From positions 310,001 to 374,000 of the IMG/VR virus record IMGVR_UViG_3300035661_000001: a stretch of DNA of 64,000 bases; one strand, written 5' to 3'. Both the position numbers and the translations under genes were made by a program. Each line of letters begins with the position of its first letter. The first letter of the stretch is position 1. This document shows positions 1,144 through 62,016 of this stretch, one piece after another. The notes below the pieces were generated by a model. That model ran no database searches and had not been told where the DNA came from. It worked only from the letters and a program-made list of their open reading frames with translations.

Positions 1144-1940
1144 TGTCGAACTCTAGTTACGCCATCCAAGAAATTTTGTTTAGAGGAATAAGGTCTCAAA
1201 TTATCTAAAGCCCAACATTTCTTAAAATTATCATCTTCCATAGAGATATATTTAAATGTTGATTTTGGAATGATATGATCTATCTGCCATGTCCATGTAG
1301 ATTGATCATCATCATTCCATTTTTTTGCATTATATGCTCCATGATTTTTCCATGTCATCCACGGCTCAAATAATGATTCTAAATGTAATTTTAATATTAA
1401 TATTGAATACTGCAGATAATCTAAACAAGAATTTCCGCCTTTAGATGATCCATTAGATTTCAAATGGAAATTTATATTAGCTGATACTGTAGTTCTAATT
1501 TTGAAATTTGTATTTGTTAATCTTTTATTTTTATTGTAGAAATTACTATATATTCTAATACTGTTTTTATTTTGTATATAATATTTTTTTGCGCCACATA
1601 TAAGTGTTTCTTTATTATTTTGATAATATAGTTTATTATAATCCTGTTTTTCTTCTTTATGTTCTTGATAGTATTCTTTTCTATCTTCGATTATCTCTTT
1701 TTTGTTTTCCTGATAGTATTCTTTTTTATCTTGTAATATTTTTTCTTTATTTTCTTTATAATAGGACGCATCATAGTCTGACTGATATTGTTTCATTTTT
1801 TCTAAATTTTTACTTTTAAATTCACGCATGTAGTTAGTGTTGCATTCTCTGCACCAACCGCCGCTCTTTTTGTAGTGAGATTCTGAAAAATCTTTTTTGT
1901 TTTTGAAATCTTTGCATTTGCCGCATTTTTTATTATTCAT
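1140..1940 (-). CDS. HNH-family homing endonuclease (copy 1)
   Basis: N-terminal CxxC...CxxC, Lys/Tyr-rich helical repeats, C-terminal HLESLFEPWMTW...WQIDHIIP...CWALDNLRPYSSKQN; antisense insertion among structural genes. Confidence 0.85.
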   Translation of the reverse strand: MNNKKCGKCKDFKNKKDFSESHYKKSGGWCRECNTNYMREFKSKNLEKMKQYQSDYDASYYKENKEKILQDKKEYYQENKKEIIEDRKEYYQEHKEEKQDYNKLYYQNNKETLICGAKKYYIQNKNSIRIYSNFYNKNKRLTNTNFKIRTTVSANINFHLKSNGSSKGGNSCLDYLQYSILILKLHLESLFEPWMTWKNHGAYNAKKWNDDDQSTWTWQIDHIIPKSTFKYISMEDDNFKKCWALDNLRPYSSKQNFLDGVTRVRH

Positions 1941-37510: not shown

Positions 37511-37511
37511 T

Positions 37512-40500
37512 ATGCAAATTCTTAGAATACTCAGTGTAACTATAAATAATAATTCAAGCATTGATGTTTCATTTACTGAAAATTTAACATCAAATCTTGT
37601 ACCGTCAAATATTTCTATTATTTCTGATACACCTAATGTACCTTCATCTGAAGTATTGTTTATAAGAATAACTGGTAATGTATTAAGTTTTGTATGTCAA
37701 CCTTTAACACCTTTAGCTTCCTATTTTATTAAACTGTCAAATACACCTACTAATCCATTTATTTCATTAAATGGAGATGCTAAAATATCAGAAGATGGCG
37801 TATCAAATATGTATTTGATAACAGGACCATTGTCTTCTGATAATCCAGTTAAAAATTTCTTTTTATCTTATTTTAAAGATAATATTTATGATTTAGAAGA
37901 TTCTAATGGTCTTGTCGCCAAATATATTGATTCTCTTAGTGTATCATTAGCAAGAGCCTTATATGATATAGGTCAAACTAAAAATGAAAATTATCTTAGT
38001 TTTACTGTTACAGATGAGCAAAAAACTAGAGGTCCTGGACCTTTTGATAGATTAAATGAAGAGAGTGCTTATGAAATTTTCAGAGTAGGAAGAGGGGCTA
38101 CTACAGCAAATGCTAGTACGGCATTTGTTATTTCTGATTTTCCAGCATACCCAATTACATTACAGAAACAAGATAATATTGAGGTTGTAAAGCCTAATAC
38201 AATAAATCAATCGGGATATTTTAACATCAATAGTTTGATTTTTAATTTATCAACATTACCTATTACCAAAGTAAATAGCATTGTATTTACACAGTTGACC
38301 GCAAATCCAATCTATGTTTACGATATAGAAAATTTTGGATATCAAATTAAAAATTCTAGATATGATCAAGATTTTGCTTTTGATTATTTAGTATTAGAAG
38401 AAAATCAAATTAAAATAAGCGATAAAATTTTAGAAGACTCCTTATTTTCTTTAGATAATATCTTAAGCGTTGAAGTTAAATATGAATCTAAAGATTTAGG
38501 TAGAGTCGTTGATTCTAATACGGTAATTGTCACTACCGTAAAAAAATCTATAAGAGAAGTTTTACCACCTATTATAAATATTTTTAATTTAAAACATGCG
38601 CCTATTACTGATACATCAGGTATAATTATTAATTTGGGCGGGGTAATATTTACTGATCCAAATACTACGACCGGGCTACAACACCCTGCTTTTATTACTG
38701 AATTGCCTTTCAGATTAAATGGTTTGCCATTTTTGCCAGGGCAATACAGCATAGATTATACAACAGGAAATGTATATGTATATGGTGCGGACTTAACTAA
38801 TGATGGTACGGGGGCATTTCCTCCATTAGCTACTTATAATTATTTATTGACTTACAAGCATAATCAAGATTATACTTATGATCCCGATCTATTGGATGTA
38901 GTTTCTTTGCCTCATGGAAATTTGCGAAATTCTAGTGGTACTGTAAAATTTAATTATGAACAAGTATTGATACCAGGAATAGATTACGTAGCTAACTTAC
39001 ATCAAGAAGTTTTGACAGAAAGAATAAATAATAATTTATTGGCTGCTAATTTGATTAAAACTCAATCATCTCCAATTACAAATGTATATAGAATATACAA
39101 TGAAACTTCTGGAGAAATTTATACTTTAGATAGATGGTCAGATAATAAAATTTATTTTAGATACAATACTCCGCCACGCATAGATCAAAAACTAAATGAA
39201 AGAGTTTCATTCAATACTGTGACAAATGAATTATTATTTGTGAATAGTTCACAGTTGAATAATTCTTTTTTAAATATTGTTAAGATTTTTTTAAATAACA
39301 ACACTATTATTTCTGGAACAGAAGACAGTGTTGCTACTTCTTTTAATACTAGTTTAACATTTTCTGATAATAATATCTTTATCAAAGAAAAATGGTTCAA
39401 TAGACAATTAGATGAATCAATTAATATAGATCGATTGGAATCGATCGGTGAATATATGATTGATTATTTTAATGGTGTTGTATATTGCGTTGTTGTTGAT
39501 CCACAGAATTTTAATATAGGTACAGTATCTTATAAGAATAATACGATTTCTCCACAATTTCCACATTTGATAAGTGTAGATGATTTGTATTATCAAATTA
39601 ATATTTTGGATTCTAAAACTAAAACATTCACATACACTTCTTTTGGTGATGGTTTTGTTATTCCAGAATCTTTAGATTATGCTGATGAATTAACTTTAAA
39701 CAATTCTGATGCGATATACCAAATTCATGATGATCAAATTGGTATATTTATGGATGGTATTTTTATTCCTGGAGTAACGAACCAGATTAAATATGTCAGA
39801 TCATTAATTGAGTATGAAGATTTATTAAACAGTACGAATCCTTTGAATTTCGCATCATTCGTTAATAGTGGGGATTTTGATGTTCAAATTGAGCCAATTA
39901 TCGGTCAGTCTTTTGAAAATGTTCAATTTGATGGAAATTATTATGTAGTTATTAATCAAAATATTCCATATTTATCAAATAATATTACATACGCTTTCAC
40001 TGTAACTCGTGTATCTGATTCTGCCACATTATGGAATGGTTCTGGTACTGTAATTCCTGGTGACGTAGTTAAATTAGTATTGCCAGGTATAAATGCGCCA
40101 AATGAAGGTGATCTAGTGAATGTAACTTTCACTTTCACCATTAATGATTTATCAAGAATAGTGATTGATTATAATAAAGGTGAATATTACATTGATTATG
40201 TTTATGTTGCTGATGAGATAATAGTTAGTTACGAACATGGTGATAATGTTTTGGATTTCAGAAAAAGTAAAAATTTACCTACGGGTTCCGTTTATTACGT
40301 AACTTATAAGGTTGGAGCATTGCGAGATGCTTTATTGAAAAATTTTGGTACGCTCGTAAATATTCCTGAATTAGCAAATTTTGATATTAATTTTGATAGA
40401 GAAAGATACCGAGATGCATTGATTGCTGCTCTTAGTTCTTTTATTCAAGGACCTACAATTACAGCTATTAAAAATATTGGTCAAACCATTTCTCATATTG

Positions 40501-43500
40501 AACCGGAAGTAATTGAATCAGTATTTCAAGAATGGTCATTAGGAAGTAGTTTGTTAAATCCAACATCTATTAAAACAAAAGGTGATTTTCAATTATTACC
40601 AGCCAAATTCGATAATGGTGTATTAATAGATTCCACAAATCAAACAATTAATTTCCCTTTTAACTCAAATATAAGATTAGAAGAAGGGACATTTGAAACA
40701 TGGATTTCATCACAATGGAATGGTTTAGATAATGACGCCCTGTTAACGTTTAATATTTTAAAAGACGGCTATGCTATTGATCCATCAAATGTATTTATAG
40801 GTACGGCTGAGGCTCATCCAGAAATAATTAATGGTTCATTTTCTATTTCTAAATTAACAAATATGATTGGTTCTCCAAATAAAAATAAAGATGGAGTATT
40901 CATTTATTATGATACTGATTTATCAGGAACATATTTAAGATGGTATGTTGAAATAATAGATGGATATGTTAGCCCAATTAGTTCTAATTATAAATTCAAA
41001 ATCACAGCCACTGGCTCATTTTATGATACGAAAAGTATTGTAATTCCTAAACCATCTAATTTAACTATTTTTACTGGAACTAGTACTGTTAATTTCAATA
41101 TCATTGGCGGTGGACAAATAGATGAAGGTATTACATTTGTATCAGATGTTGATCATTACATTTTAGATGTTGGAGAAGATAAAACAAAAAATCGTATTTC
41201 TTTATTCAAAGACATTAGTGGATATTTGAATTTTAGGGTATACGATAAAAATAAAACACCATATACAATTAGTTCTGACGTTTCTAATTGGAAATCTGGC
41301 GATCTACATCATATTGCAGTTTCTTGGAAATTAAATACTAGAAATGGACGTGATGAAATGCATTTATTTGTGGATGGTTTTGAAATACCTAACATTATTA
41401 AATATGGTCAAAAGTTAAGACCATATTTACATGAAAAATTCAGAACAATAAATCCAGAAGAAATTATAGGATCGACTAATATAGATATAGTTTCATCAAC
41501 AGATTTATTAATTACAGCTGGTAATGATACGGTTTCTTCTAGTGTTAATTTTAGTGCTTACAATATTTTCGCCGGAGATACTATTTACATTGATGAATTG
41601 GGTTTTTCGGATTCTGGGTATACTATCATTTCAATAAATGGTCAGAATTTAGTTTTATCTCAATTAATGCCAGTAACATTATCAAATGGAAGATTTTCTG
41701 TAAATAGAACGAAATACGAAGTAGTTTCAGATATTGATGTTTCTCCCAATATTACAGTTTCTACAATTCATGCAATGTTATCTGGTACAGATTTGATTGG
41801 TAATTCTGGAAATGATACTGTCATGTCTCCTAGCATCAATTTTACTAATGATAATATTGTGCAAGGATATCTGTTAAAAATAGATGATACGCTTATTACA
41901 AATATATATACTATTGTCGCAGTAAACGGCAATACATTGACTATCAATGATAATTTACCAACTAGTATCTCTAGTACTACATTTAGAATTTATTCAAATG
42001 TTGAAAATGAATTGCCTGGAGTAAGAGCATTAGAACCAGCATACAGTATATCTAAAGATAATAATTTTAATAATGTCTTAACATTATCTAGCCAGGTGTT
42101 TGCCGGAGATTTAATTCTAATTAAAACGTTAGGTTTAAATCACAGAAAAATAAAACAAAACTATTATGTATGGAGTGATGGTGTAGAAAATATTTTAATG
42201 ACAAATTTGCCACCACCTATTTCATTGGATGAGGCAAATATTACTAGAATAATTACACCAACAACTGTTATCAATTCTTCTAATTCGACTTTATCTGGTG
42301 GAGTATTGCATTCCAATAATTTAGATACCGCTAAGCCATCAAATTCTCAAAATGGCAGAACCATAAGCGTTACTATAAGTGGAACAAATATAGATTTTAC
42401 AATACCAGTCCAAGTAACCATAAATGGAGTAAGTGGAATTAATACTATTAGTGAAACTATCATTTTTAATGATTATGGCACTTTAGATTTCACTAATCTT
42501 TATTTGTCTTTAAATTATGTGAATATAAATGTAAAACCAACAAACACTTCAAAATCAGCATGTACAATAACAGTTAAAGAAAAATATTCTATCACACATG
42601 CGGAAAGCAGTGGATACGCTCCAGTAGTAAAATTCAGCTATCAAATAGGTTATGGATATACTTTATACAATAGCGGTATTAACTCTGTTACTGATGATAG
42701 TAAATTATTTAGCGCACTTGATGTTAATAATTATTTAGTAATTAGTTCGCCAGTACAAGCAGCAGGCTTCTATAAAATTACTAGTGTCTCACAAGATCGT
42801 AAAACATTGTTCATTGATCCGACTAGTGCGGCTCCAGTGTTACCTATACCTTCATTTGATAATGGAGTATATCAAATTTTACAGGTTAATTCATATCGAA
42901 GTGGATTGCAAAATGGCTTCTTCACATTTGAAGTTAATGTATTGCCAAGCCAAGCGTATTATCTTGATAAAGGTTTTTACGAATTAGAGTATTTTACCTA
43001 TACTAGAATTGGATTAGACCCAATTAATAATCAAGTATTTTTGGGCAGTGATTATACTGGGCACTTACAATTACATGGATTAATCGATCAAGTTAAAATT
43101 TACTCGACTATGTTGACAGACACTAGAATTGGCGAAAGTATTCCTGAAAATCAGCGTTCAATCACTAAGGATTTCAATTCATTAAAATCCTTATCATCAG
43201 ATGCAACGACATTAATGTTAATAGATTTTAATACTTTTCCTTTTAAGAATGTTGCGGATTTTTATGTTTCACCAAGTCCCATAAAAAAACATTTCTATTC
43301 TTCATTAGTTGTAAATGAAAATTTTGGAAATAGTCTGGTAATGTTGGAAGAACCATTAATTATTTCAAATGATGGTGTTTTGAATACTAGAAAAGAAGGT
43401 ACATTAGAATTTTGGGTTAATCCATTGTTTGATACTTGTAATGATCCTCATAAAAGATTTTATTTTGATGCTTACGGCGCAATAACAGAAGAAATAGTTA

Positions 43501-44642
43501 GCGTTAATAATGTGTCATTGAAATTATCTAGTCCTGCATCACAAATATTAAGTGTAAAGATCAAGAATGGTGATTCAAAATTAGATTATTTTGCTGGTGG
43601 TAAAATAGAAATAGATACTCAAAATGCTATTCAAGAACAAAAAAATAGTATAGGTAATAGTGCCGTGTTAGTTTCCAAACCAATATTACAAGTCATAACT
43701 ATAAAAATTATTGGGGATCTTACTGATACTGATTATTTTGCAAATGGTGCTATTAGTTCTGATATGCAAATTATTTATCTTGGAAAGATTTTACCAAGTA
43801 GTAATTTGCCATTATTAATAACATATCAAACTGCAGAGAATGAAAACAAAATTATTAATACTCAAATAATAAGATTGAATAAAAAACTTCCTTACCAAAA
43901 ATCTCATGTTGTAGTTAATTATATTCCTAAAGGTTTACAAGGAGATCGTATTGCAATTTTTAAAGATGAAATAGGTTATTTAAATTTTGCAATTACTGCT
44001 TCTGGAAAAGATTACGTTATAGGCGCACCAACCTATTGGGCTAGAGATACATGGCATAAAGTGAAAGCTAGTTTCATTATCAACAGTGGTATTAATAAAG
44101 ATGAAATGAGATTGTTTATTGATGGCTATATATATAATAATGTTGTTTTTGGTTCTGATTTGATTGCTGGAACTTTGCCCGCTATAACAGGATCGGTAAC
44201 CATTGGTGATGGCTATGGTAGTTTGGGAAGCATAAAATTTAAAGACTCAATTAATGAAGTGTTCATTGGAGCACAATACGATAAACAATATCCAATATTT
44301 AGTTTGTTAGATAATTTCAGAATTAGCAGTGTCTCAAGACCTATTTATGCACCATACGGTGAGCCTTTAGATGTAGGATACAGTTCCAATTTAGACATGG
44401 TCTTTCCAGTAACAGAAGATTTGTACACCACCTATCTATTAAATTCTGATGCAATTTCATTTATAAATGATGATTTTGCCACCATCAGGAATAGACGATC
44501 TGGTTTATTTGATTTTTCTGTTAATATAATAGATAGTCTCGGTATAGTAAATAGTAGCATAAAATCCAAAGAAGCCTTAGAAAAATTGATTAAAGTCCTT
44601 AAGCCGGCTAATTCCAGGGCATTTATTCAATATATTAAATGA
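37512..44642 (+). CDS. giant baseplate wedge protein with LamG/concanavalin-like domains
   Basis: 2376 aa; LKNFG...RERYRDAL...GPT wedge motif, LamG-like EGTFETW/HHIAVSW/LFVDG and EGTLEFW/WHKVKASF/LFIDG, C-terminal LKPANSR as in GpI-like proteins. Confidence 0.65.
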   Translation: MQILRILSVTINNNSSIDVSFTENLTSNLVPSNISIISDTPNVPSSEVLFIRITGNVLSFVCQPLTPLASYFIKLSNTPTNPFISLNGDAKISEDGVSNMYLITGPLSSDNPVKNFFLSYFKDNIYDLEDSNGLVAKYIDSLSVSLARALYDIGQTKNENYLSFTVTDEQKTRGPGPFDRLNEESAYEIFRVGRGATTANASTAFVISDFPAYPITLQKQDNIEVVKPNTINQSGYFNINSLIFNLSTLPITKVNSIVFTQLTANPIYVYDIENFGYQIKNSRYDQDFAFDYLVLEENQIKISDKILEDSLFSLDNILSVEVKYESKDLGRVVDSNTVIVTTVKKSIREVLPPIINIFNLKHAPITDTSGIIINLGGVIFTDPNTTTGLQHPAFITELPFRLNGLPFLPGQYSIDYTTGNVYVYGADLTNDGTGAFPPLATYNYLLTYKHNQDYTYDPDLLDVVSLPHGNLRNSSGTVKFNYEQVLIPGIDYVANLHQEVLTERINNNLLAANLIKTQSSPITNVYRIYNETSGEIYTLDRWSDNKIYFRYNTPPRIDQKLNERVSFNTVTNELLFVNSSQLNNSFLNIVKIFLNNNTIISGTEDSVATSFNTSLTFSDNNIFIKEKWFNRQLDESINIDRLESIGEYMIDYFNGVVYCVVVDPQNFNIGTVSYKNNTISPQFPHLISVDDLYYQINILDSKTKTFTYTSFGDGFVIPESLDYADELTLNNSDAIYQIHDDQIGIFMDGIFIPGVTNQIKYVRSLIEYEDLLNSTNPLNFASFVNSGDFDVQIEPIIGQSFENVQFDGNYYVVINQNIPYLSNNITYAFTVTRVSDSATLWNGSGTVIPGDVVKLVLPGINAPNEGDLVNVTFTFTINDLSRIVIDYNKGEYYIDYVYVADEIIVSYEHGDNVLDFRKSKNLPTGSVYYVTYKVGALRDALLKNFGTLVNIPELANFDINFDRERYRDALIAALSSFIQGPTITAIKNIGQTISHIEPEVIESVFQEWSLGSSLLNPTSIKTKGDFQLLPAKFDNGVLIDSTNQTINFPFNSNIRLEEGTFETWISSQWNGLDNDALLTFNILKDGYAIDPSNVFIGTAEAHPEIINGSFSISKLTNMIGSPNKNKDGVFIYYDTDLSGTYLRWYVEIIDGYVSPISSNYKFKITATGSFYDTKSIVIPKPSNLTIFTGTSTVNFNIIGGGQIDEGITFVSDVDHYILDVGEDKTKNRISLFKDISGYLNFRVYDKNKTPYTISSDVSNWKSGDLHHIAVSWKLNTRNGRDEMHLFVDGFEIPNIIKYGQKLRPYLHEKFRTINPEEIIGSTNIDIVSSTDLLITAGNDTVSSSVNFSAYNIFAGDTIYIDELGFSDSGYTIISINGQNLVLSQLMPVTLSNGRFSVNRTKYEVVSDIDVSPNITVSTIHAMLSGTDLIGNSGNDTVMSPSINFTNDNIVQGYLLKIDDTLITNIYTIVAVNGNTLTINDNLPTSISSTTFRIYSNVENELPGVRALEPAYSISKDNNFNNVLTLSSQVFAGDLILIKTLGLNHRKIKQNYYVWSDGVENILMTNLPPPISLDEANITRIITPTTVINSSNSTLSGGVLHSNNLDTAKPSNSQNGRTISVTISGTNIDFTIPVQVTINGVSGINTISETIIFNDYGTLDFTNLYLSLNYVNINVKPTNTSKSACTITVKEKYSITHAESSGYAPVVKFSYQIGYGYTLYNSGINSVTDDSKLFSALDVNNYLVISSPVQAAGFYKITSVSQDRKTLFIDPTSAAPVLPIPSFDNGVYQILQVNSYRSGLQNGFFTFEVNVLPSQAYYLDKGFYELEYFTYTRIGLDPINNQVFLGSDYTGHLQLHGLIDQVKIYSTMLTDTRIGESIPENQRSITKDFNSLKSLSSDATTLMLIDFNTFPFKNVADFYVSPSPIKKHFYSSLVVNENFGNSLVMLEEPLIISNDGVLNTRKEGTLEFWVNPLFDTCNDPHKRFYFDAYGAITEEIVSVNNVSLKLSSPASQILSVKIKNGDSKLDYFAGGKIEIDTQNAIQEQKNSIGNSAVLVSKPILQVITIKIIGDLTDTDYFANGAISSDMQIIYLGKILPSSNLPLLITYQTAENENKIINTQIIRLNKKLPYQKSHVVVNYIPKGLQGDRIAIFKDEIGYLNFAITASGKDYVIGAPTYWARDTWHKVKASFIINSGINKDEMRLFIDGYIYNNVVFGSDLIAGTLPAITGSVTIGDGYGSLGSIKFKDSINEVFIGAQYDKQYPIFSLLDNFRISSVSRPIYAPYGEPLDVGYSSNLDMVFPVTEDLYTTYLLNSDAISFINDDFATIRNRRSGLFDFSVNIIDSLGIVNSSIKSKEALEKLIKVLKPANSRAFIQYIK

Positions 44643-44649
44643 GAACAAA

Positions 44650-47600
44650 ATGACAAAAAGAAGCCCTATTTCTGCTCAACAAAATATATGGTTTGATGCT
44701 CAACAAGTAGATAATACTGACTTGACATTGGAACAAGATTTTAACAATACTATAAATTCTGCAGTAATTGGTAATCATATAGGTTCAGGAACCTTGCCTG
44801 AAGTACTAGAACAGATTGTTCTATTTGACTCTTCTCTAGCCTCTGGTTTTTTGGATGGCACAATTGTACAAATCCAAAATCAACCTTCAGATAATAATTT
44901 AGGTAATCAATTAGAAATAGAATTAACCGGTTCTAATGTCGCAGGAAAAAAAGCAATTAAATTTTGCGTAATTGGGTTAGACTTTCAAAGTAATTTAATT
45001 TATGAAACTTTCTATTTCAGAACAAATGAAATACAAGTTACTCGTCAACATTTTGCTCAAATTTTATTATTGTTATTCAATGATTTTATTGGAGATTCTA
45101 CTCTTTCTCTTAATTTGGTAGGCAAATTAATAGTTAGAGAGGCTAGACCTTTAACTATTTCTAGAGATCCAATTATGGTCTCTCAGGCGGTAGAGCCTAA
45201 TTTATTTTTCAGAGATTTTTATGTTGCTGGATTTAGTTCATTATTAAGTTTATTACAAACAGCTTTACCATTATACAATATCGATACTCTTAATATTTAT
45301 ACTGCTCCACTAGATAATAAAATTTTAGGAGTTGGAGACGTTACTACTCAAATTGGACAAAAATTTGTTACAAAAACTAGTAATATTCAAAAGGTCACAT
45401 TATTATTATCAGTACAAAATACAGAAGTAGGTAATGAAGATGATTTAGCCTGGAATGGTGATATCGTTGTTAGTTTGTATCCATTACAATCAACTATAGA
45501 ATGTATTTCTGATATCGCTCCTAATTCTCCTATAGACTTTTCTCCTTCAAACATACCTTTAGCGCAATTAAGTTTTAATTACAACACTTTACAAGCTTCA
45601 GGAACAGTTTTAGATACGGTCCCTCAACCAGTTGATTTTATTTTTAGCAATGGTTCAGTTGCTAATGGAAACCAATTAGTTATTGGTAATTATTATACAG
45701 TTACTATTAAGAGATCGGGCTCAGCTGATAAATGTGATATTTTAATAGCAGCAGGTTCAAATCATACTTTCAATTCAAGAATAACTACATTCACCGGAAC
45801 GTTGTGGATAGATATTCCTGAACAAGATTTGTGGTTTAAAATATGGACAGATGCCGCAAAAGTTTCAGATGGTCAAGTATACGAAAATGGTTATGGAAGC
45901 ATTCTTCCAAAAATCATCGAAGATTCTGACACGCTTGCCACAGTTGATTATTCATTTGGTAATATTCAATTTAAAGGTAACGATATATACAGGGCGGTTG
46001 TCGCAGCAATCACGGAAGAAACTACACCAATTCCTGATCAAAGAACTGGTAATCCAGTTCTTTCTAGACAACAATTTATTCCAAAAATAAATTTATTAAA
46101 TACGATTGACTTAACGAATTTAGAAAAAGCTTCTGATCCATTAATTATTGGTGCTATCTCTGATAAAAATATCAAGTTTTTTGATTCATTATCAGCAGTA
46201 ATTAATTCAAAATTGTATAGCGCCACTATAGTACACGATGAATTAATTGTTAAAATAGTAGATGATTCTACTGATACTGTTAGATTTGATAGCTCTGTCT
46301 CTGGTTTGATCTCTAGTCTTTTGAATGGAGATTTTGTTGGAGCTAAAATTTTTCCAAATGCTGGCGCTATTAATATCTATTATAGAATAGCTTCCTCAAA
46401 ATTAATATCTTGTATACTTGGAGATGTAAATGGAGATGGAATTATAGATGAAAAGGATTTGGAATTATTAAATAGTTATATTGATTATGATTTAAATGTT
46501 GGCTTACCAGTTGATACTGTAGTTGTTACTGATGGTACTACCACCACATTTACCAATAGTTATAATACATATACAAACAATTTTAGTAATTTATTCGGAA
46601 TCACTTTTCAAGTTGTAAATTCAATTACTAATGCGGTAATTGCTTCAGGTACTGATGGCGTATTGGTCGCTCATCCCACAAATAATAGATTAGCTCAATT
46701 TACAAGTTCTAGTATAATATTTGGAGATATTGTTGGATTAGGAAGTCATAAATTAGTATTGATAACACCTAGTAATCAAGAAAATTACGGTGGGTTTGAT
46801 ATCGTATCAATTGATACGTTGACAGATGTATTGACTATTAGAAAAGTGATTTTAACAGGCGATGTAATTATGCAAATGTTAAGATCTGATATTGATGGTG
46901 ATTTTCATGTTACTAATAATGATGGATATTTGTTATCAAATTATATTGAAAAAGCAGTATTATCATCATCTCTTACTAGCACATATCCTGGACCAACAAC
47001 TAATCCATTTACCAAAATCGGAACCAAATTTAATACTATCAGATTTAAATTAGAACAATTTACAGATCGAGCAGATGATTATGCGACAGATCCAAATGAT
47101 AGAGTAAATGTAGTACATCCTTCTCCTGATATCTTTCTGTCGGATGGATATTTTGAAAATCATGATTTTTATACAAGTCCATCTGTTTTATCTTTCCAAA
47201 AACAACTGACATGGGATGAATCTTTAATTGTAACTAATAGTCGCCCACGATTTGTGCCATGTGTGTTCCCAACTCTTTCGGGATTCATGGAAAATAAATG
47301 TTCTATTGAAGGAGTAAATGTTAATATTTACGAATCTAAACCGGATTTTGATTCGGGTAGAGTAGATGTATTTGTTCCTGATAATTTGATTATTGGCAGA
47401 GGTGGGGAAATACATAGACCAGATGGTAATTTTTATAAAGTAGATTTTGAAGTTGGTACTATTGTATTAGAGATTCCTGACGGAATATTTGGAGCAGAAC
47501 GTACCATAAATGTTTTAGATGATTTTATTGCAGATTATACCGGAGATGGTAGAACTCGTTTAGGATTCCCTTCAATGAAATTTGCTGACTGTTCACTAGT

Positions 47601-48189
47601 TAATGCTGACGCTTTAATTAACGATCAAGTGAGATTCTCAGTTGCAGTTCAATCTTTTTCACCTAACACAAATGGACTGAGCACTGATGGTTATGAAGGT
47701 GCTATAGTAGATGGTAAAATTGGAGTAGCAATAGATTATCAGACCGGATTATTAACACTGAATTTTACCAATTTGTATCAAGATACAATTTTACAAACAT
47801 TAAGTACTAAAATTCAAGTAAGCATTTTCTTGAAAAAAGGCGGGTTTAATAACCAACCACTGTTTGTAGATTCAGTAAAAATGCAAAATATGTTAAAACT
47901 AGTTAGCGTATTTAGTGGAGCTGTAGACGGAGGACCATCTGCATTAGTAGATTTACAATCAGACATTACTGGAATACTACCAATTATACATGGTGGTACA
48001 GGATTGAATGATGTTGGTGCTTTCGGAACCGTATTGATTAGTAACGGTAGCGGACTAAGTTATCAATTCATAGTCAGTGATTCTATAGTCTATATTCCTG
48101 CTAATATTACTGATTGGTCTGGTGTTGCACCGGCATCGGTGCAAGAGGCTCTAGACAGAATTGCAGCGGCGATAGGTCCGATCCCATAA
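44650..48189 (+). CDS. baseplate/fibre-attachment structural protein with dockerin/EF-hand-like motifs
   Basis: N-terminal WFDAQQV...DLTLEQ; GDVNGDGIIDEKD and SDIDGDFHVTNND Ca-binding motifs; C-terminal LPIIHGGTG and SVQEALDRI fibre motifs. Confidence 0.6.
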   Translation: MTKRSPISAQQNIWFDAQQVDNTDLTLEQDFNNTINSAVIGNHIGSGTLPEVLEQIVLFDSSLASGFLDGTIVQIQNQPSDNNLGNQLEIELTGSNVAGKKAIKFCVIGLDFQSNLIYETFYFRTNEIQVTRQHFAQILLLLFNDFIGDSTLSLNLVGKLIVREARPLTISRDPIMVSQAVEPNLFFRDFYVAGFSSLLSLLQTALPLYNIDTLNIYTAPLDNKILGVGDVTTQIGQKFVTKTSNIQKVTLLLSVQNTEVGNEDDLAWNGDIVVSLYPLQSTIECISDIAPNSPIDFSPSNIPLAQLSFNYNTLQASGTVLDTVPQPVDFIFSNGSVANGNQLVIGNYYTVTIKRSGSADKCDILIAAGSNHTFNSRITTFTGTLWIDIPEQDLWFKIWTDAAKVSDGQVYENGYGSILPKIIEDSDTLATVDYSFGNIQFKGNDIYRAVVAAITEETTPIPDQRTGNPVLSRQQFIPKINLLNTIDLTNLEKASDPLIIGAISDKNIKFFDSLSAVINSKLYSATIVHDELIVKIVDDSTDTVRFDSSVSGLISSLLNGDFVGAKIFPNAGAINIYYRIASSKLISCILGDVNGDGIIDEKDLELLNSYIDYDLNVGLPVDTVVVTDGTTTTFTNSYNTYTNNFSNLFGITFQVVNSITNAVIASGTDGVLVAHPTNNRLAQFTSSSIIFGDIVGLGSHKLVLITPSNQENYGGFDIVSIDTLTDVLTIRKVILTGDVIMQMLRSDIDGDFHVTNNDGYLLSNYIEKAVLSSSLTSTYPGPTTNPFTKIGTKFNTIRFKLEQFTDRADDYATDPNDRVNVVHPSPDIFLSDGYFENHDFYTSPSVLSFQKQLTWDESLIVTNSRPRFVPCVFPTLSGFMENKCSIEGVNVNIYESKPDFDSGRVDVFVPDNLIIGRGGEIHRPDGNFYKVDFEVGTIVLEIPDGIFGAERTINVLDDFIADYTGDGRTRLGFPSMKFADCSLVNADALINDQVRFSVAVQSFSPNTNGLSTDGYEGAIVDGKIGVAIDYQTGLLTLNFTNLYQDTILQTLSTKIQVSIFLKKGGFNNQPLFVDSVKMQNMLKLVSVFSGAVDGGPSALVDLQSDITGILPIIHGGTGLNDVGAFGTVLISNGSGLSYQFIVSDSIVYIPANITDWSGVAPASVQEALDRIAAAIGPIP

Positions 48190-48573: not shown

Positions 48574-49317
48574 ATGGACAATTTAAAATGTATTAAGTGT
48601 GAAATAGAAAAAGAGCAAACTGAAGATAATTTTTATTATCGAAAAGACACTAATAAATGGAAGCCAGTTTGCAAAACTTGTTTGAGTGATAAAAACAAAA
48701 AAATATATGCAAACAATTCTGAAGATATAAAAACCAGATGTAATGTATATAGAGATAAAAATCGGAAAGTAATCAATACTAAAGCAAAAATTTACAATTC
48801 AAAACCCGATGTAAAATTAAGAAATAAAACTTATAGACAAGATAATAAAGTGGCTTTAAGAAAAAAAGAAAAAGCGTGGCGCCTCAAAAATCCAGAAAAA
48901 CACAAAGAAATTGCAAGAAAAAAATCTCAGAAACAAAACAAAAAGCCAATGTCAAAAATAAAACATCACATTTCTTGGTGTGTCAGTAAGGCTCTGATAA
49001 AGCAAAATACTTCAAAAGCAAACAAGTCAATAATTAATTATTTAGGTTATTCAATTCAAGAATTGAAAGAACATCTTGAAAAACAATTTGAATCATGGAT
49101 GACTTGGGATAATTATGGTGTTTATAAATTATCTTCTTGGAAAGATGATGATAAGTCTACATGGACTTGGCAAATAGATCACGTCATACCTCATTCGACG
49201 TTTAAGTATATTTCTATGAAAGATGGAGAATTTAAGAAGTGTTGGGCATTAGAAAACTTGAGACCATATTCCGCCAAACAGAATGTTTTGGATGGTGCAA
49301 ATAAAACGAGACATTAA
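48574..49317 (+). CDS. HNH-family homing endonuclease (copy 2)
   Basis: CxxC...CxxC, HLEKQFESWMTW...WQIDHVIP...CWALENLRPYSAKQN. Confidence 0.85.
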   Translation: MDNLKCIKCEIEKEQTEDNFYYRKDTNKWKPVCKTCLSDKNKKIYANNSEDIKTRCNVYRDKNRKVINTKAKIYNSKPDVKLRNKTYRQDNKVALRKKEKAWRLKNPEKHKEIARKKSQKQNKKPMSKIKHHISWCVSKALIKQNTSKANKSIINYLGYSIQELKEHLEKQFESWMTWDNYGVYKLSSWKDDDKSTWTWQIDHVIPHSTFKYISMKDGEFKKCWALENLRPYSAKQNVLDGANKTRH

Positions 49318-50442
49318 ATGAAAATTCTTATAAGACAATTCCTTGGAAAATCTCATAGCTGGAGCATCGTTGGTTGGGGTATCGCTAATGCTTTAATAAA
49401 AAACCATGATGTTCATTTGTTTTCTACGGATGGTATTAAACATACTCCTCAAAATTTAAAACCCTATGTAATAGGTTATACTGAAGAAAATGATCCCAAA
49501 GTTGTGGGAAGAATTCCTGATGCAGAATATGATTGCCAAATCAGCTATACTTGCATGAAAAATTTTCAATGGACATTGAGTAATGGGAACAAAAATAGAT
49601 TTGGCATTTGGTGCTATGAGTGGGCTGGTAAAAATGTATTACCAAATGGATTTGCAAAATCCTATCAATCTTGTGATCAAATCCTAGCTCCTAGCCAATT
49701 TGCAAAACAAGTTTTTATGGACTCAGGGGTTCCCGAATTTTCAATTAAAGTTATTTCTCATGGAATAAATTCTGAACAATATGTACAGAATACTACTATT
49801 AAACTTCCAACAAATAAAAAATACAAACTATTTGCAAACATAGCTCAACCTCATATTCGTAAAAATATTCCAGGGTTATTAAAAGCTTATGGTAAAGCTT
49901 TTAATAAACATGATGATGTTTGTTTAATTTTGAAATGTGGTAAAACACCCAAGAAAAGATTTGATTTCGAAGTAGCGTTTGATAAATGTTTACATGATTT
50001 TTACACGCAATTTCCAAATCATGCAGAAGTTAAAATTTTTGCCGATTTTGTTGAAGACATCTCGGCTCTTTATAGAAGTGTAGATACGGTAATCACATTG
50101 GCTCATTGTGAAGGATTTTATTTTCCGGGACTTGAAGCTCTTGCTTCTGGCAAATCAGTTATTGCTCCCAGGTGGGGAGGTCAATTAGATTTTCTGAATG
50201 ATAATAATGCTTTGCTCATTAATGGTAAAGAGTCTAGAGCTAATCCACAAAGCATGTATTGGGATAGTAAAAATAATGCAATTTGGTTTGAACCAGACAT
50301 TAATGATGCTGTTGATAAAATGAAATTTGCGTACCAAAATTACGAATCTTTGAATTCTAAATCAGAAGAGAATCGCCCCGCTATTTTAGAAAAATTTGAT
50401 TGGTCTATAATAACAAATCAAATTTTAGATTTATGTAAATAA
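49318..50442 (+). CDS. GT-B (GT4-like) glycosyltransferase
   Basis: PSQF...VISHGI, RKNIPGLLKAY, EGFYFPGLEALASGKSVI (E-x7-E signature). Confidence 0.9.
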   Translation: MKILIRQFLGKSHSWSIVGWGIANALIKNHDVHLFSTDGIKHTPQNLKPYVIGYTEENDPKVVGRIPDAEYDCQISYTCMKNFQWTLSNGNKNRFGIWCYEWAGKNVLPNGFAKSYQSCDQILAPSQFAKQVFMDSGVPEFSIKVISHGINSEQYVQNTTIKLPTNKKYKLFANIAQPHIRKNIPGLLKAYGKAFNKHDDVCLILKCGKTPKKRFDFEVAFDKCLHDFYTQFPNHAEVKIFADFVEDISALYRSVDTVITLAHCEGFYFPGLEALASGKSVIAPRWGGQLDFLNDNNALLINGKESRANPQSMYWDSKNNAIWFEPDINDAVDKMKFAYQNYESLNSKSEENRPAILEKFDWSIITNQILDLCK

Positions 50443-56039: not shown

Positions 56040-56078
56040 ATCTCGGTCTTCTGATATATTTTGTCAGAAGACCGAGAT
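56040..56078. repeat. 15-bp inverted repeat with TGATATAT at the stem/loop junction (terminator and/or promoter hairpin)
   Basis: atctcggtcttctga-tatattttg-tcagaagaccgagat, followed by a T-run. Confidence 0.75.
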
Positions 56079-56084
56079 ATTTTT

Positions 56085-57542
56085 ATGAATGAAATTGTCG
56101 TTTTAAATAACAAAAAATGCGTCATCAAATCAGAGGACACAGAACTATTAAAAAAAGTAAAGAATTTTCTGTCGTTTAAAATGGCAGGAGCAGAGTATTC
56201 ACCGGCTTATCAAAATGGCTGGAATGGTATAACATATTTATTAACTAAAACTAATAAATTTGATTTGGGATTGTTATCCAAAGTAGAGAATTTTCTCACA
56301 GAAAAAGGTTTTGAATATCAAGTCACGGATACTCGTGCCCCCGTGCAATTTAATGAGCCTTTGGCTATTTCTGATAACTTAAAAAAACACGGATTCATAC
56401 CACGTGACTATCAGTTAAAAATGCTAGACGTAGCAATGAAGAACAATAAAGGAATTGTTCGAGCTTGTACGGGTGCGGGCAAAACACTTACTATTGCAAT
56501 GATTACGGCTCAACTAAATAAGCCGACTATGATTTATGTTATTGGATTGGATTTATTAGATCAATTTCACAAGTTATTCAGCAAACTATTTAATGAAAAA
56601 ATAGGTTACATTGGAAACGGCACTGTAGATATTGCACGAATAAATATCGCATCTATATGGACCGTTGGTAAGGCTTTAAAAATAGACAATCCAATTACTG
56701 ATGCTGAAGAATTAAATGATGGAGAAGTTTTTGTAGAAAGCAATAGAGATAAAATTGTAAATGCTCTCAAAGAATCTAAAGTTAGTTTTTTTGATGAGTC
56801 ACACGTTTGTACAACCAATACTATTTCTACAATTTATAAAAACATTAACCCTGAACATATCTACGGATTTAGCGGAACGCCATTTAGAGATGACGGCTCT
56901 GATCTTTTAATAAACGGTATTCTTGGAGAGCAAATTATTAATGTATCAGCCTCTGAATTAATAGACAAAGGTGTTCTAGCTAGACCGCTGATTAAATTCG
57001 TATCTGTGCCTAAAATGAGTTGTTCGGGACAATATCTTTCTGTGTATAAAGATTACATAGTGGAAAATGAAATAAGAAATAATCTTATTGTAGAGAACAC
57101 TAAATCTTTAATAGATAAAAAATATACTCCGCTAGTATTGTTTAAACAAATCAAACATGGAGAAATTATCTATCAAAAATTATTGGATGCAGGAATATTA
57201 TGCGCCATTTTGCATGGCAATGACGATTTGGAAAGACGACAAGAAGTAAAAGATCAATTGGTTAATGGTGAAATTCAAGCTATTGTAGCAAGTACTATTT
57301 TTGATATTGGTTTAGATTTACCACAACTAAGCGGATTAGTATTATGTGGTGGTGGTAAAAGTACCATCAGATGTTTACAGAGAGTTGGACGTGTACTTAG
57401 AATGGTGCCAGGTAAAAAATTTGCCGCTGTTATAGATTTTTATGACCAAGCAAAATTTTTAAAAAAACATGCACAGCTTCGGCACGCCACCTATGCATCT
57501 GAGCCTGGCTTTAAAGTAATAAAATCCAAGGAAATGAAGTAA
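56085..57542 (+). CDS. SF2 DNA helicase, UvsW-like
   Basis: PRDYQ, TGAGKT, DESH, SGTPFR, GLDLP, QRVGRVLR; likely start is the ATG at 56085, because the listed TTG lies inside the hairpin. Confidence 0.88.
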   Translation: MNEIVVLNNKKCVIKSEDTELLKKVKNFLSFKMAGAEYSPAYQNGWNGITYLLTKTNKFDLGLLSKVENFLTEKGFEYQVTDTRAPVQFNEPLAISDNLKKHGFIPRDYQLKMLDVAMKNNKGIVRACTGAGKTLTIAMITAQLNKPTMIYVIGLDLLDQFHKLFSKLFNEKIGYIGNGTVDIARINIASIWTVGKALKIDNPITDAEELNDGEVFVESNRDKIVNALKESKVSFFDESHVCTTNTISTIYKNINPEHIYGFSGTPFRDDGSDLLINGILGEQIINVSASELIDKGVLARPLIKFVSVPKMSCSGQYLSVYKDYIVENEIRNNLIVENTKSLIDKKYTPLVLFKQIKHGEIIYQKLLDAGILCAILHGNDDLERRQEVKDQLVNGEIQAIVASTIFDIGLDLPQLSGLVLCGGGKSTIRCLQRVGRVLRMVPGKKFAAVIDFYDQAKFLKKHAQLRHATYASEPGFKVIKSKEMK

Positions 57543-57544
57543 AT

Positions 57545-57572
57545 TTGACGAACTGCTATTCGGCGTTACATT
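57545..57572 (+). promoter_or_regulatory. sigma70-like promoter
   Basis: TTGACG-16 nt-TACATT, ending 21 nt upstream of the ATG at 57594. Confidence 0.55.
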
Positions 57573-57593
57573 GTAAGTACGTAAATACATACC

Positions 57594-57965
57594 ATGTCAA
57601 AACTTAATAATATTGGAATTATTCATAATGATTTTTATAAAGAACAATCAATTAATAATGTTATTAATGAAATAGAAATTTATATTATTCATCCTTTTCC
57701 AAAATTAGAAGTAATACAATTACCAAATATTTATATTAATCATAGCGCGTTAGCTGACGAGTTTTCAGAAAATGGCATTATGTATTTTTATGATCTTAAA
57801 ATTTGTAAAACAGATTTAGAAGAGTTGGTAACTCTGCGTCAATTCAAAAATGTCATGTTACTTAAAATGGAACATGATTTTTTGTTTGCTGACATGACCA
57901 TGTCTAAATTTTTAGAAGTAGCTAACAAAACTCGTCGGAAATCAAATCTGAAATTATTTTGGTGA
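57594..57965 (+). CDS. hypothetical protein; C-terminal LxxF-family member
   Basis: 123 aa ending RKSNLKLFW*. Confidence 0.6.
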   Translation: MSKLNNIGIIHNDFYKEQSINNVINEIEIYIIHPFPKLEVIQLPNIYINHSALADEFSENGIMYFYDLKICKTDLEELVTLRQFKNVMLLKMEHDFLFADMTMSKFLEVANKTRRKSNLKLFW

Positions 57966-57968
57966 TCA

Positions 57969-58145
57969 ATGCCTAAGAAAAAAGAAATAGATTTAACAGG
58001 AGGAATTTTAAATGAAGTTCCTAATGAATATTATAAGAAATTTTTCGATAAGTTCGAAGAGATAAAAATATTAGAAATTGAAAAATGGAAACCTGTACAT
58101 ATTTTTGTAATGATATATGGAAACAAAAATATGTACAATTTGTAA
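57969..58145 (+). pseudogene. orphan N-terminal fragment paralogous to the 58901 gene
   Basis: MPKKKEIDLTGGILNEVPNEYYKKFFDKFEEIKILEIEKWKPVHIF... aligns with ...GAPNEKYEKFFKKFEEVSILDPSSWSVTHLL of 58901; similarity stops at the HNH start. Confidence 0.75.
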
Positions 58146-58911
58146 TGACGAAAAAGATATTGAAGAATTTTTACTTAGAACTGATTCGGGAACTCGCCGA
58201 AAATCTTGCAAAAAATGCTACAATAGTAAAGTTACAAATTATAAGAAAATTAACAAAGATATTATTTCATTAAAAAATAAAAAATATCAAGAAATAAATA
58301 AAGACAGTAGAAGAACATACAGAAAAAAATATCACACAAATAATAAAGATCGTGAAAATACCCGTAGTATTAATTATGCAAATTCTAATCAAGAAAAAAT
58401 AGCAAGTTATCAAAAATCGTATAGGAATGATCATGTCGAAAAAATTAGCACTTATGGTATAGAGTATCGTAAAAAAAATAAAGATAAATTAAATAAAAAA
58501 CAAAGAATTTATTCAAAAACAAGAAAGAGCATTGACCCAGCATTCAAATTAAGATCTAGATTTTCAACTAGCATATGGATATCCTTAAATTCAAATAATA
58601 GTACTAAAAATGGAAATTCTATATTAAAATATCTTCCTTATTCTATACAAGAATTAAAAGAATATTTAGAAAAACAATTTGAGCACTGGATGAATTGGAA
58701 TAATTGGGGAAGATTTTCTAAATCATGGGATGATAATAATTTAAAAACATGGAAATGGCAAATAGATCATATTATTCCTCAAAGTATTTTACCATATACA
58801 TCTATGGAAGATAGTAATTTCAAGAAGTGTTGGGCATTAGAAAACTTAAGACCTTATTCTGCAAAATAAAATGTATTAGATGGAGTAACTAAAATAAGAC
58901 ATGAAAAATGA
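58117..58911 (+). pseudogene. HNH homing endonuclease (copy 3) with premature TAA at 58867-58869
   Basis: ...LRPYSAK*NVLDGVTKIRHEK*; the other two copies read YSAKQNVLDG / YSSKQNFLDG at this position. Confidence 0.8.
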
Positions 58912-59491
58912 TAATATCAATATAAAATTAGAAGGAGCGCCCAATGAAAAATACGAAAAATTTTTTAAAAAATTCGAAGAGGTATCTATCTTAGATCCAT
59001 CTTCTTGGAGTGTAACTCATCTTTTAGGATATTTTTGTAAAAAATATAAAGAGCAATATCAAACAGATTATAAATTCAAATTCAATAGTCCCACACCATC
59101 CAAATGTTTTGAGGTTTTTCAAATCAAAAAACTAGCAATGAATTTAACAGCCGATCCATTTTTGTTAAAAGAATATATTGATTGGGTGTATGATAATAAA
59201 GTTGTTAAAGCCAAAAGAAAATTAACTTCTATTTCTTTCATGACTAATGAAGGTGTCGTGAATGAATATAAAATAAATGTTCTTTTATCGAATGATAGGG
59301 AATCAAGTATAGATCGATCTGCATTTTTGCCTGAAAAATACAAAAATGTATTTGAAGAAATAGGTATGACCATTAATACTTATGGTGAATTAGCATTCAT
59401 TCATCAAATGGATGACGAAAAGGTAGCTGCGGCTTTTTCAAGAATAGAATTAATTGGTTTTGATAAGTCTAAATTAGAAAATATTGTATGA
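58901..59491 (+). CDS. hypothetical protein, possibly replication initiator-associated
   Basis: 196 aa, helical; located upstream of the DnaC-like and DnaB genes. Function inferred from position only. Confidence 0.5.
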   Translation: MKNDNINIKLEGAPNEKYEKFFKKFEEVSILDPSSWSVTHLLGYFCKKYKEQYQTDYKFKFNSPTPSKCFEVFQIKKLAMNLTADPFLLKEYIDWVYDNKVVKAKRKLTSISFMTNEGVVNEYKINVLLSNDRESSIDRSAFLPEKYKNVFEEIGMTINTYGELAFIHQMDDEKVAAAFSRIELIGFDKSKLENIV

Positions 59492-59880
59492 TATTGGTTA
59501 ATTGTAACTCTTCAGAATATTTAGATGAAGTGGGATATATTTTTCCAACTGATATTTTTGATATGATTCCATTATTGTATACTACAGAGTTTATTAAATG
59601 TAGTGATACTAATGTGAATTATTTACACACTGTTGTTAGAACCAAAATTGAAGAAAAATCGCAATGGGATTTAACTTGGGGCAGACCATTATCATGGTCT
59701 GGTCCATATGATAAATTGAAAAATTTGAATAAAGTAATTGTTTTCTATATGGAATCAGATGATTTGACAAAAAATGAAATGAAAGATATCGTTTTTTGTG
59801 TTGTATGTTCTGAACAATATACAAAAGAACAATTATTAACAATTATGAAGAGATATTCAAAATTGAAGGTGTTTTTATGA
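59488..59880 (+). CDS. hypothetical protein; C-terminal LxxF-family member
   Basis: 130 aa, ATGA-coupled at both ends, ending YTKEQLLTIMKRYSKLKVFL*. Confidence 0.6.
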   Translation: MILVNCNSSEYLDEVGYIFPTDIFDMIPLLYTTEFIKCSDTNVNYLHTVVRTKIEEKSQWDLTWGRPLSWSGPYDKLKNLNKVIVFYMESDDLTKNEMKDIVFCVVCSEQYTKEQLLTIMKRYSKLKVFL

Positions 59881-60278
59881 TTCCACAAAAAGGAAGTCAC
59901 GTTAAGTGTGTAATGCGTAATAATTTAGTTTTGGAGGGAGTTGTAGAGTCATGGTCAGATGATCAGTCTATATTACGATCTTTAGATGACTCATCTCTTT
60001 CTATTATACAGCACTCCTTGGAAGATATAGTGGTGATCAAGGTTATCCTTAAAAAGCCCCTTCAAACAAAAAAAGAATTAGAAATAAAATTTGAAGAAGA
60101 GGTTAAGAAGCCGAGCGATGATAATCTGAGATTGAAAAACATAGTAGAATTAAAAAATATGTTAAATAATCAAGAAAAGAAAATTATCGCAGAGAATTTG
60201 AAAAATCATCATATTGGAGAGATTAAGAAAATAAATTATGGACAACCTGGATTTTTCCCGAAGCCGAGCATTAAATAA
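59877..60278 (+). CDS. hypothetical protein with possible Sm/Hfq-like N-terminal fold and coiled-coil tail
   Basis: GSHVKCVMRNNLVLEGVVESWSDDQSILRS resembles the Sm1 motif. Confidence 0.45.
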   Translation: MIPQKGSHVKCVMRNNLVLEGVVESWSDDQSILRSLDDSSLSIIQHSLEDIVVIKVILKKPLQTKKELEIKFEEEVKKPSDDNLRLKNIVELKNMLNNQEKKIIAENLKNHHIGEIKKINYGQPGFFPKPSIK

Positions 60279-62016
60279 TATTCCAAAAAGAAAGCTGCAT
60301 GAAAAACTCGCAGAAATTTCTAGTACTGACGAAGATATTAAGATAAAAAATGTCAAATTAATTGCGATAAATAGATATGCAGAAAGCAATATTCCAATTG
60401 AATATTGGGGGTTGAAGATGGAAAAAGATTTCACCGGAGACCAAAGATTATTAACAAAATACAACGAGTATTGTGCGGATTTAAAACAATCTTATCGAGA
60501 TGGTGTTTCTATTTGTTTTGCTGGTGGACATGGAAGAGGCAAGCAATTATCATTAGATACAGAATTGCCTACCCCTAATGGTTTTATTAAACTTATGGAT
60601 TTAAAAGAAGGTGATAAATTATTTGATGAGCAAGGTAACATATGTAATGTATTGCAGCTTCATCCCATTAATTTATCGCCTGAATCATATCAAATAGAAT
60701 TTGATGATGGTACAAAAGTGGAGGCTTGCGCTGATCATTTATGGTTTACTTGGGATAGCGCTTCTCGCAAATCATATCAGCGTTCTAAAAATCCAACTAT
60801 TCATCCTCAAGTACGAAATACCAAAGAAATTTTGAAAACTTTAATTTCTAAAGGTAAACGCGGAAAAAATCATTCAATACCATGTATTAAACCTGTTAAT
60901 TATTCTGAAAAAAAACTATTAGTTGATCCCTATGTTTTAGGGTGTTGGTTAGGTGATGGAGAAACAAATTCTGGAGCTATCGAATGTGCTGATCAAGATA
61001 TTTTAACAGAAATTCAAAATGTCGGATATTCTGTTAATTTAACAGAATCTTCGCAACTTCATAATTCTAAATCTCGTCGGTATAGAATTGGTGATTTAAT
61101 AGATATTAAAATAAAAAATACGCCACATAAGATCGGCTTGCTATGTCAACAATTAAAACAGATTAATGTATTAAATAATAAACATGTTCCTGATGAATAT
61201 TTATATTCATCATATGAACAAAGACTATCTTTAATTCAAGGATTAATGGATACTGATGGTTGTTGTTTGAATACTGGAGTAATGGAATATTGTACAGTAC
61301 TACCAGAATTAGCAAAACAAATACAACAGCTAATTCATAGTATGGGAATAAAATGTTCTTTGCACAAAAATGAATCTTGGTTGTATGATAAACGATGCAA
61401 AGATCGATACAGAATAAAAATTATTACACAATTACCAATTTTTAGATTAAAAAGAAAGCTAAAAAACATTAGATTGAAAAAGAATCAATTAGCAAAAACT
61501 ACGCATAGATATATTGTTAATATAATTCCCATTGATCCTAAACCAATGAGATGTATTACAGTAGATAGTCCTAATCATTTATTTTTAATCACAAGATCTT
61601 TTATTCCAACACATAACACTATGGCAGTTAGTTGTATTCTCAAGAAGGCTTGTGGTAAAAACTTTTCATGTCTTTATACTACACTGACAGATATTGTGAA
61701 TACATTAACACAAGCATCAGGTGATGATAAATATCTGGCTCGCCGAGAATTATCTTTGATAGATTTTTTGGTCATTGATGAGTTTGATCCAAGATTTATG
61801 CCTTCTGAAAATGCAGCGGATTTATACGCTCGAAGTCTAGAAGGTATTTTCAGGGCTAGAAGCCAAAATAAACTTCCTACATTAATGTGTACTAATAGTC
61901 CTAACGTAGTTAAGTCATTTCATGGAGCATTGCAGGAAAGCATAGATTCTTTGATGAAAGGTTATTTAACAGTGTTTCCAGTATTCGGTGATGATTTTAG
62001 AAAGAAAGGCTTATGA
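60238..62016 (+). CDS. DnaC/IstB-like AAA+ helicase loader containing an intein
   Basis: Walker A GGHGRGK|T split by the intein; Walker B FLVIDE, R...LPTLMCTN; directly upstream of DnaB. Spliced extein is 234 aa. Confidence 0.85.
   Translation: MDNLDFSRSRALNNIPKRKLHEKLAEISSTDEDIKIKNVKLIAINRYAESNIPIEYWGLKMEKDFTGDQRLLTKYNEYCADLKQSYRDGVSICFAGGHGRGKQLSLDTELPTPNGFIKLMDLKEGDKLFDEQGNICNVLQLHPINLSPESYQIEFDDGTKVEACADHLWFTWDSASRKSYQRSKNPTIHPQVRNTKEILKTLISKGKRGKNHSIPCIKPVNYSEKKLLVDPYVLGCWLGDGETNSGAIECADQDILTEIQNVGYSVNLTESSQLHNSKSRRYRIGDLIDIKIKNTPHKIGLLCQQLKQINVLNNKHVPDEYLYSSYEQRLSLIQGLMDTDGCCLNTGVMEYCTVLPELAKQIQQLIHSMGIKCSLHKNESWLYDKRCKDRYRIKIITQLPIFRLKRKLKNIRLKKNQLAKTTHRYIVNIIPIDPKPMRCITVDSPNHLFLITRSFIPTHNTMAVSCILKKACGKNFSCLYTTLTDIVNTLTQASGDDKYLARRELSLIDFLVIDEFDPRFMPSENAADLYARSLEGIFRARSQNKLPTLMCTNSPNVVKSFHGALQESIDSLMKGYLTVFPVFGDDFRKKGL
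60544..61617 (+). mobile_element. class 3 intein (Gln1) with LAGLIDADG endonuclease, 358 aa
   Basis: Starts QLSLDTELPTPNG; block B ACADHLW; LGCWLGDG and LIQGLMDTDG; block F MRCITVD; ends IPTHN followed by Thr+1. Confidence 0.9.

Follow-up and report, generated by a model that had tools for sequence, protein, structure and literature searches.

An HNH endonuclease gene of a 452-kb phage is located inside the start of a conserved gene of the replication module, brings its own substitute start for that gene, and leaves the old start behind as a relic. The same layout recurs in related phages and at a second gene, and looks like a splicing-free way for such selfish elements to live inside genes. 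The anatomy is established by sequence comparison, while cleavage, homing and any role of the retained target sequence are inferred.

Organization of the HNH region

The DNA analysed, hereafter the window, is a stretch of 64,000 nucleotides (bases 310001-374000) of a complete phage genome of 451,956 bp with terminal repeats (IMG/VR record IMGVR_UViG_3300035661_000001), recovered from microbial-mat and sediment metagenomes. Relevant features are listed in Table 1. In the region of interest all genes lie on the + strand. The 196-aa gene is followed by two small genes, a DnaC-like loader interrupted by an intein, and a DnaB-type helicase. Relatives match residues 1-106 and 461-590 only, and lack the insert. 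Much of the window upstream is filled by very long ORFs.

Table 1. Coordinates of the features within the window.
Positions	Strand	Feature	Remarks
1140-1940	-	HNH paralogue	
7236-13133, 21795-26693, 33425-48189		Very long ORFs	1179-2376 aa
48531..48554	+	Short relic of the first codons of the glycosyltransferase gene	20 nt before the paralogous HNH gene; 7-residue match to codons 9-15 of the downstream gene
48574..49317	+	Paralogous HNH gene	Glycosyltransferase-site clade; open 247-aa frame
49318..50442	+	GT4-family glycosyltransferase	Pfam Glycos_transf_1, Glyco_transf_4; target gene of the second HNH clade
56061..57542	+	UvsW-like DNA helicase	Pfam ResIII, Helicase_C, UvsW_N
57594..57965	+	Small ORF	123 aa; no family hit
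57969..58145	+	Relic of the original N-terminus of the target gene	58 codons, own ATG; codons 1-46 (57969-58106) homologous to the family; last 12 codons are read-on into the cassette and overlap the HNH start
58086..58111	+	Conserved end of the relic	Codons 40-46 plus a few bases; taken as the left half of the homing site
58117..58911	+	HNH homing endonuclease gene	In-frame TAA at 58867-58869; conserved frame ends at TGA 58909-58911
58901..59026	+	Replacement N-terminus of the working gene	Codons 1-42; start codon inside the original HNH reading frame
58901..59491	+	Target gene	196 aa, unknown function, replication module
60238-62016	+	DnaC-like helicase loader	Interrupted by an intein with a LAGLIDADG endonuclease domain

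The 58-codon ORF is a true N-terminal copy of the 196-aa gene. The two products share 16/33 identical residues in BLASTP comparisons (E 1e-9). The match is not fortuitous, because the short ORF also matches the N-termini of 18 relatives from IMG/VR at 42-64% identity, including its first 13 residues, which have no counterpart in the downstream gene of the window. The ORF keeps the invariant P, N, Y, K, F, F positions and the glycine pair typical of HNH-free alleles. An earlier note, made from the sequence alone, had placed the end of the similarity where the HNH gene begins. This is right to within 6-11 nt, since family-level similarity runs through codon 46 (58104-58106), and a nucleotide motif shared with other HNH cassettes runs to about 58111. 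A reading-frame shift seemingly extending the relic into the next conserved motif, and a 10-bp direct repeat near the junction, involve bases belonging to the conserved start of the HNH gene. The stretch is carried without a single difference across both junctions by contigs of four public sequencing runs from four studies, and is not an assembly artefact. No HNH-free joint was seen in these contigs.

Features of the HNH gene and of the target gene

Profile hits of the HNH product are weak. Pfam HNH_4 is below its cut-off (E 0.0095), and PHROG 2340 'endonuclease' is matched at E 7.5e-8. The alignment of 16 homologues shows nonetheless the conserved Asp-His, Asn and final Asn and Arg-His positions. 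The HNH ORF (58117-58869) is cut short by a fresh in-frame TAA. Most homologues, including the nearest relatives, have Gln at this position. The frame stays open and conserved for 13 more codons, and overlaps the start of the 196-aa gene by 11 nt. Identity to the HNH of locus L093 (L numbers denote the loci of relatives fetched from databases) is 61% over 264 residues with one TAA inside, and 75% to that of L095. The stop, present in all four runs, removes the last conserved Asn and Arg-His of the motif, so the enzyme is probably dead. A whole relic together with a single disabling mutation fits a recent invasion followed by the first step of decay.

About ten paralogues of this HNH family, which has more than 1500 proteins on record, are found in the genome. 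In-frame stops were flagged in four matches. The one in the gene at 58117 is real, but the copy at the glycosyltransferase gene reads as an open frame. An HNH homologue in a 336-kb phage (L038:2989-3492) aligns at 65% identity in its best segment, but its open frame stops after 167 aa, and it looks like another decayed copy.

The target gene has 64 relatives in IMG/VR and JGI metagenomes, none closer than 64%, and 34 invariant columns were counted in 16 sequences. Searches of the GenBank phage collection, with DNA or protein, found nothing. The product matches no Pfam or PHROG family. The AlphaFold2 model is predicted with confidence (pLDDT 85) to be all-helical, but Foldseek comparisons to PDB gave nothing at E <= 0.001. 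A wide VIA search peaked at Z 4.9 on AAA+ lid-like helical bundles, and hit a phage helicase-loader fragment at Z 3.4. This is below what helical models reach by chance, and the function of the protein stays unknown.

The upstream copy is the ancestral one

In nearly all relatives the 196-aa gene follows the helicase within about 20-130 bp, or follows a small ORF. About 50 HNH-free loci with the same gene order carry one copy only. Of 66 loci with a hit to N-terminal queries, only this genome has two hits. Two copies flanking the HNH could in principle stem from an old tandem duplication of the 5' part of the gene, into which the HNH landed later. This is contradicted by the lack of HNH-free relatives with two copies among the loci scanned. 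Moreover, the two copies in the window are only 40-48% identical in protein, less alike than the relic is to orthologues in other phages, yet the relic has no stop or frameshift. This fits a foreign origin of one copy and not slow divergence in place, and the tandem duplication is regarded as highly improbable.

The upstream copy is 44-60% identical to close HNH-free relatives, and its identity to each relative is what the rest of the gene predicts (residuals near zero). The working N-terminus is 33-53% identical to HNH-free relatives, below expectation for the closest ones (z about -1 to -2.3), and lacks the glycine pair seen in HNH-free alleles and in both long relics. Its nearest match (22/34, 65%) is the N-terminus behind the HNH of L093, followed by those of L004 and L095, all HNH-linked. 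These comparisons rest on 30-46 residues, and are suggestive rather than strong on their own. Linkage within the cassette is not strict. The HNH nearest to that of the window (L095) does not carry the nearest N-terminus (L093), which points to recombination within cassettes, and the working N-terminus of L004 looks like an ordinary HNH-free one.

It is of interest that the gap between helicase and target gene is a landing place for other elements. GIY-YIG genes are found there in L006 (4982-5896) and L009 (1747-2688), and on the far side of the helicase in L008 (1463-2107). The junction is therefore a hot spot for unrelated selfish nucleases. Neither GIY-YIG genes nor small ORFs inserted in the gap leave a relic. 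Small ORFs (68-123 aa with that of the window), standing before the target gene in L064 (1028-1348, no HNH) and before the HNH in L013 (4832-5173) and L095 (2107-2460), end with the same last codons as the small ORF of the window, but are otherwise barely alignable. Their homology, judged only from position and last codons, is weak. The small ORF of the window is taken as part of the pre-insertion arrangement. Ancestry is mosaic across the insertion point. The helicase is closest to L008/L010/L013 (59-62%) and only about 45% identical to L002-L006, whereas the genes to the right (58901-62016) are closest to L002-L004. This fits nuclease genes marking recombination boundaries. In L019 (3292-5961) the helicase is 889 aa long, and is matched by that of the window in two blocks separated by about 1.2 kb, suggesting an intein or other insert.

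A conserved relic end accompanies the HNH gene

HNH genes of the same clade stand directly before the 196-aa gene in five other lineages (L004/L005, L013, L093, L094 and L095). By gene order, this is also the case in the contigs of the two nearest database proteins for which DNA could not be compared. The four nearest database HNH proteins all lie between the helicase and the ~200-aa gene. The clade has support 96/93, with L013 joining at 87/85.

In all six lineages with DNA the conserved relic end lies 10-35 nt before the HNH start. At 5 or fewer mismatches it is found nowhere else in about 1 Mb (both strands of the fetched loci), and is unique on the + strand of the 452-kb genome, so it is not a general promoter. 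Sigma-70 promoter and terminator scans gave no more hits than shuffled sequence. The six copies differ by 3.3/21 bases on average, against 8.1/21 for the same codons in 44 working alleles, and 0 of 20000 random sextets are as alike, although the HNH proteins have diverged to 51-75% identity. The motif is therefore constrained as DNA and moves with the cassette. L094 keeps 30 relic codons with an in-frame loss of 13. L095 has a junction almost identical in DNA to that of the window, but only the last relic codons. The trimmed relics (L004/L093, L013/L095) and the internal deletion of L094 all resume at the same codon. This may reflect constraint on both sides, the stop of the upstream gene on the left and a needed DNA element on the right.

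Alternatively, the HNH might be an ordinary intergenic homing endonuclease gene sitting upstream of its target, with the full relics of this phage, L094 and L032 being separate accidents of one-sided, microhomology-mediated repair, and the short motif a promoter or operator merely resembling the target. The duplication would then play no part in the spread of the element. In four of six lineages only 7-10 relic codons remain, so the element looks intergenic, and the internal junction of L094 may lie at a short shared stretch. Both one-sided illegitimate repair and operators mimicking homing sites are known in T4 (PMC2988022). However, in the window and L094 the motif is in phase and contiguous with the rest of the relic, the relic end is kept in all nine lineages examined at two unrelated target genes, and independent accidents would not all end at the same codon. 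This alternative is considered unlikely.

The relic could also be retained as a working small protein, or as a leader ORF delivering ribosomes to the HNH start. The frame is open with all family-invariant residues present. The window and L095 lack the GAGG-type ribosome-binding stretch found before the HNH in L004, L013 and L094, and the relic frames of L094 and L032 stay open and stop 3 and 13 nt before the HNH ATG. In contrast, four lineages have lost the start and the first 39 codons of the relic, and the ORF is on record only from this phage, on 5 contigs, a search for other annotated relic ORFs having found only itself. An open frame of 58 codons is also expected for a recent event. This role seems quite improbable.

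A second target gene

The paralogous HNH gene preceding the GT4 glycosyltransferase gene is similarly preceded by a seven-codon relic of the start of that gene. A 17-codon relic of the same gene is found before the HNH in L032 (12/17 identical to the working start, z 16 against shuffles), and the short form in L026. The three HNH genes form their own clade with support 100/100. HNH clades track their target genes. The relics carry the residue found in the HNH-free alleles L105/L106, while the working copies differ there. The architecture is a habit of the family, not an accident of one locus. A protein-level search for flank duplications around the other HNH paralogues of the genome, which short relics would escape, revealed only these two sites.

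A model for the cassette

We favour with good, though not full, confidence the view that the HNH gene belongs to a mobile cassette inserted in the coding sequence of a conserved phage gene, about 46 codons from its start, which keeps that gene working without splicing. The cassette has three pieces: a short left end derived from the target, the HNH gene, and a substitute N-terminal coding segment with its own start codon. After insertion the host gene is read from the substitute start, and the original one is stranded. In agreement with the earlier note, which inferred that the endonuclease had invaded the 5' part of the gene carrying a replacement N-terminus, each part accessible to sequence comparison came out as proposed, and the target site predicted near 58085-58110 is supported indirectly by the conserved relic end.

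We infer that the enzyme cuts HNH-free alleles near codons 40-50, where the conserved motif meets the most conserved N-terminal stretch of the gene. The break would be repaired from an HNH-bearing genome, with the gene body as right-hand homology and the relic, or its conserved end, as left-hand homology. The first cassette probably arose by one-sided, microhomology-mediated repair. In the HNH-bearing genome neither copy would hold the whole site, as the relic would have the left half, and the working gene the right half with a diverged left half (9 of 21 bases differ in the window). However, substitute N-termini are not significantly more diverged at the presumed site than HNH-free alleles (means 7.8 vs 6.7 mismatches of 21, p 0.076), and the cleavage resistance proposed in the earlier note remains a hypothesis. 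The retained motif may be kept as a homing arm and/or as an operator.

Homing endonuclease genes are thought to survive in genes only with the help of introns or inteins, or else to stay between genes. It is possible, though tentative, that this large HNH family uses a third way to live inside essential coding sequences, each cassette carrying a substitute 5' gene segment with its own start and keeping about 24 nt of the displaced target. Invasion would swap gene starts between phages, and leave relics that decay in a recognisable series. If general, this would explain orphan short ORFs beside endonuclease genes in large phages, give a route by which gene ends are exchanged between distant phages, and pin the likely recognition site of an uncharacterised HNH clade to a few dozen bases. 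The series of full relic, relic with internal deletion, short relic and nonsense mutation in the enzyme would help in dating invasions in metagenomes.

Comparison with known systems

Short N-terminal exons next to endonuclease genes are often missed in phage annotation (PMC10448857), and the relic might be taken as exon 1 of a split gene. However, no Rfam intron family matches 57400-59700 at E <= 1, a sub-threshold microRNA hit being the only match. The HNH has its own start and stop and is out of frame with the relic, the downstream gene has a complete, conserved N-terminus with its own start, and four lineages have no usable first exon. An intron or intein is thus most improbable.

Free-standing seg and mob genes of T4-like phages are similarly HNH or GIY-YIG genes without intron or intein, sporadic among related phages, adjacent to conserved replication or nucleotide-metabolism genes, present as many paralogues per genome, and drag flanking sequence along (PMC2988022, PMC10448857). 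The T4 elements sit between genes, or split a gene into two working pieces, as in Aeh1 nrdA and T4 gene 60, and none is described in PMC2988022 as carrying a duplicate gene start and leaving a relic. No phage case of a replaced gene start emerged from our literature searches, which were incomplete and provide absence of evidence only. Illegitimate one-sided double-strand-break repair in T4 intron homing (Parker, Belisle and Belfort 1999, as summarised in PMC2988022) offers a tested route by which a cassette can enter a site with homology on one side only, with junctions at microhomology, but is a laboratory outcome, not a natural, propagating architecture. I-TevI is autorepressed through an operator that mimics its homing site and lies just upstream of the endonuclease ORF (PMC2988022). 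Binding and repression are proven for I-TevI, while for the phage motif this role is only a hypothesis.

The closest parallel is provided by mobile endonuclease ORFs of fungal mitochondria that carry a foreign gene end, found in Allomyces macrogynus atp6 and in Glomus sp. atp6, atp9, cox2 and nad3 (PMC3630166). There, too, an endonuclease gene moves together with a diverged copy of the end of its target gene, the inserted copy becomes the working one, and the native copy, which resembles close relatives, stays beside the endonuclease as a relic. In the fungal elements the C-terminus is replaced by LAGLIDADG or GIY-YIG ORFs, often with in-frame fusion, and the native piece lies downstream. The phage elements are the mirror image, as the N-terminus is replaced with a new start codon, the relic lies upstream, the enzyme is HNH, the host is a jumbo phage, and a short relic end is conserved next to the endonuclease across lineages.
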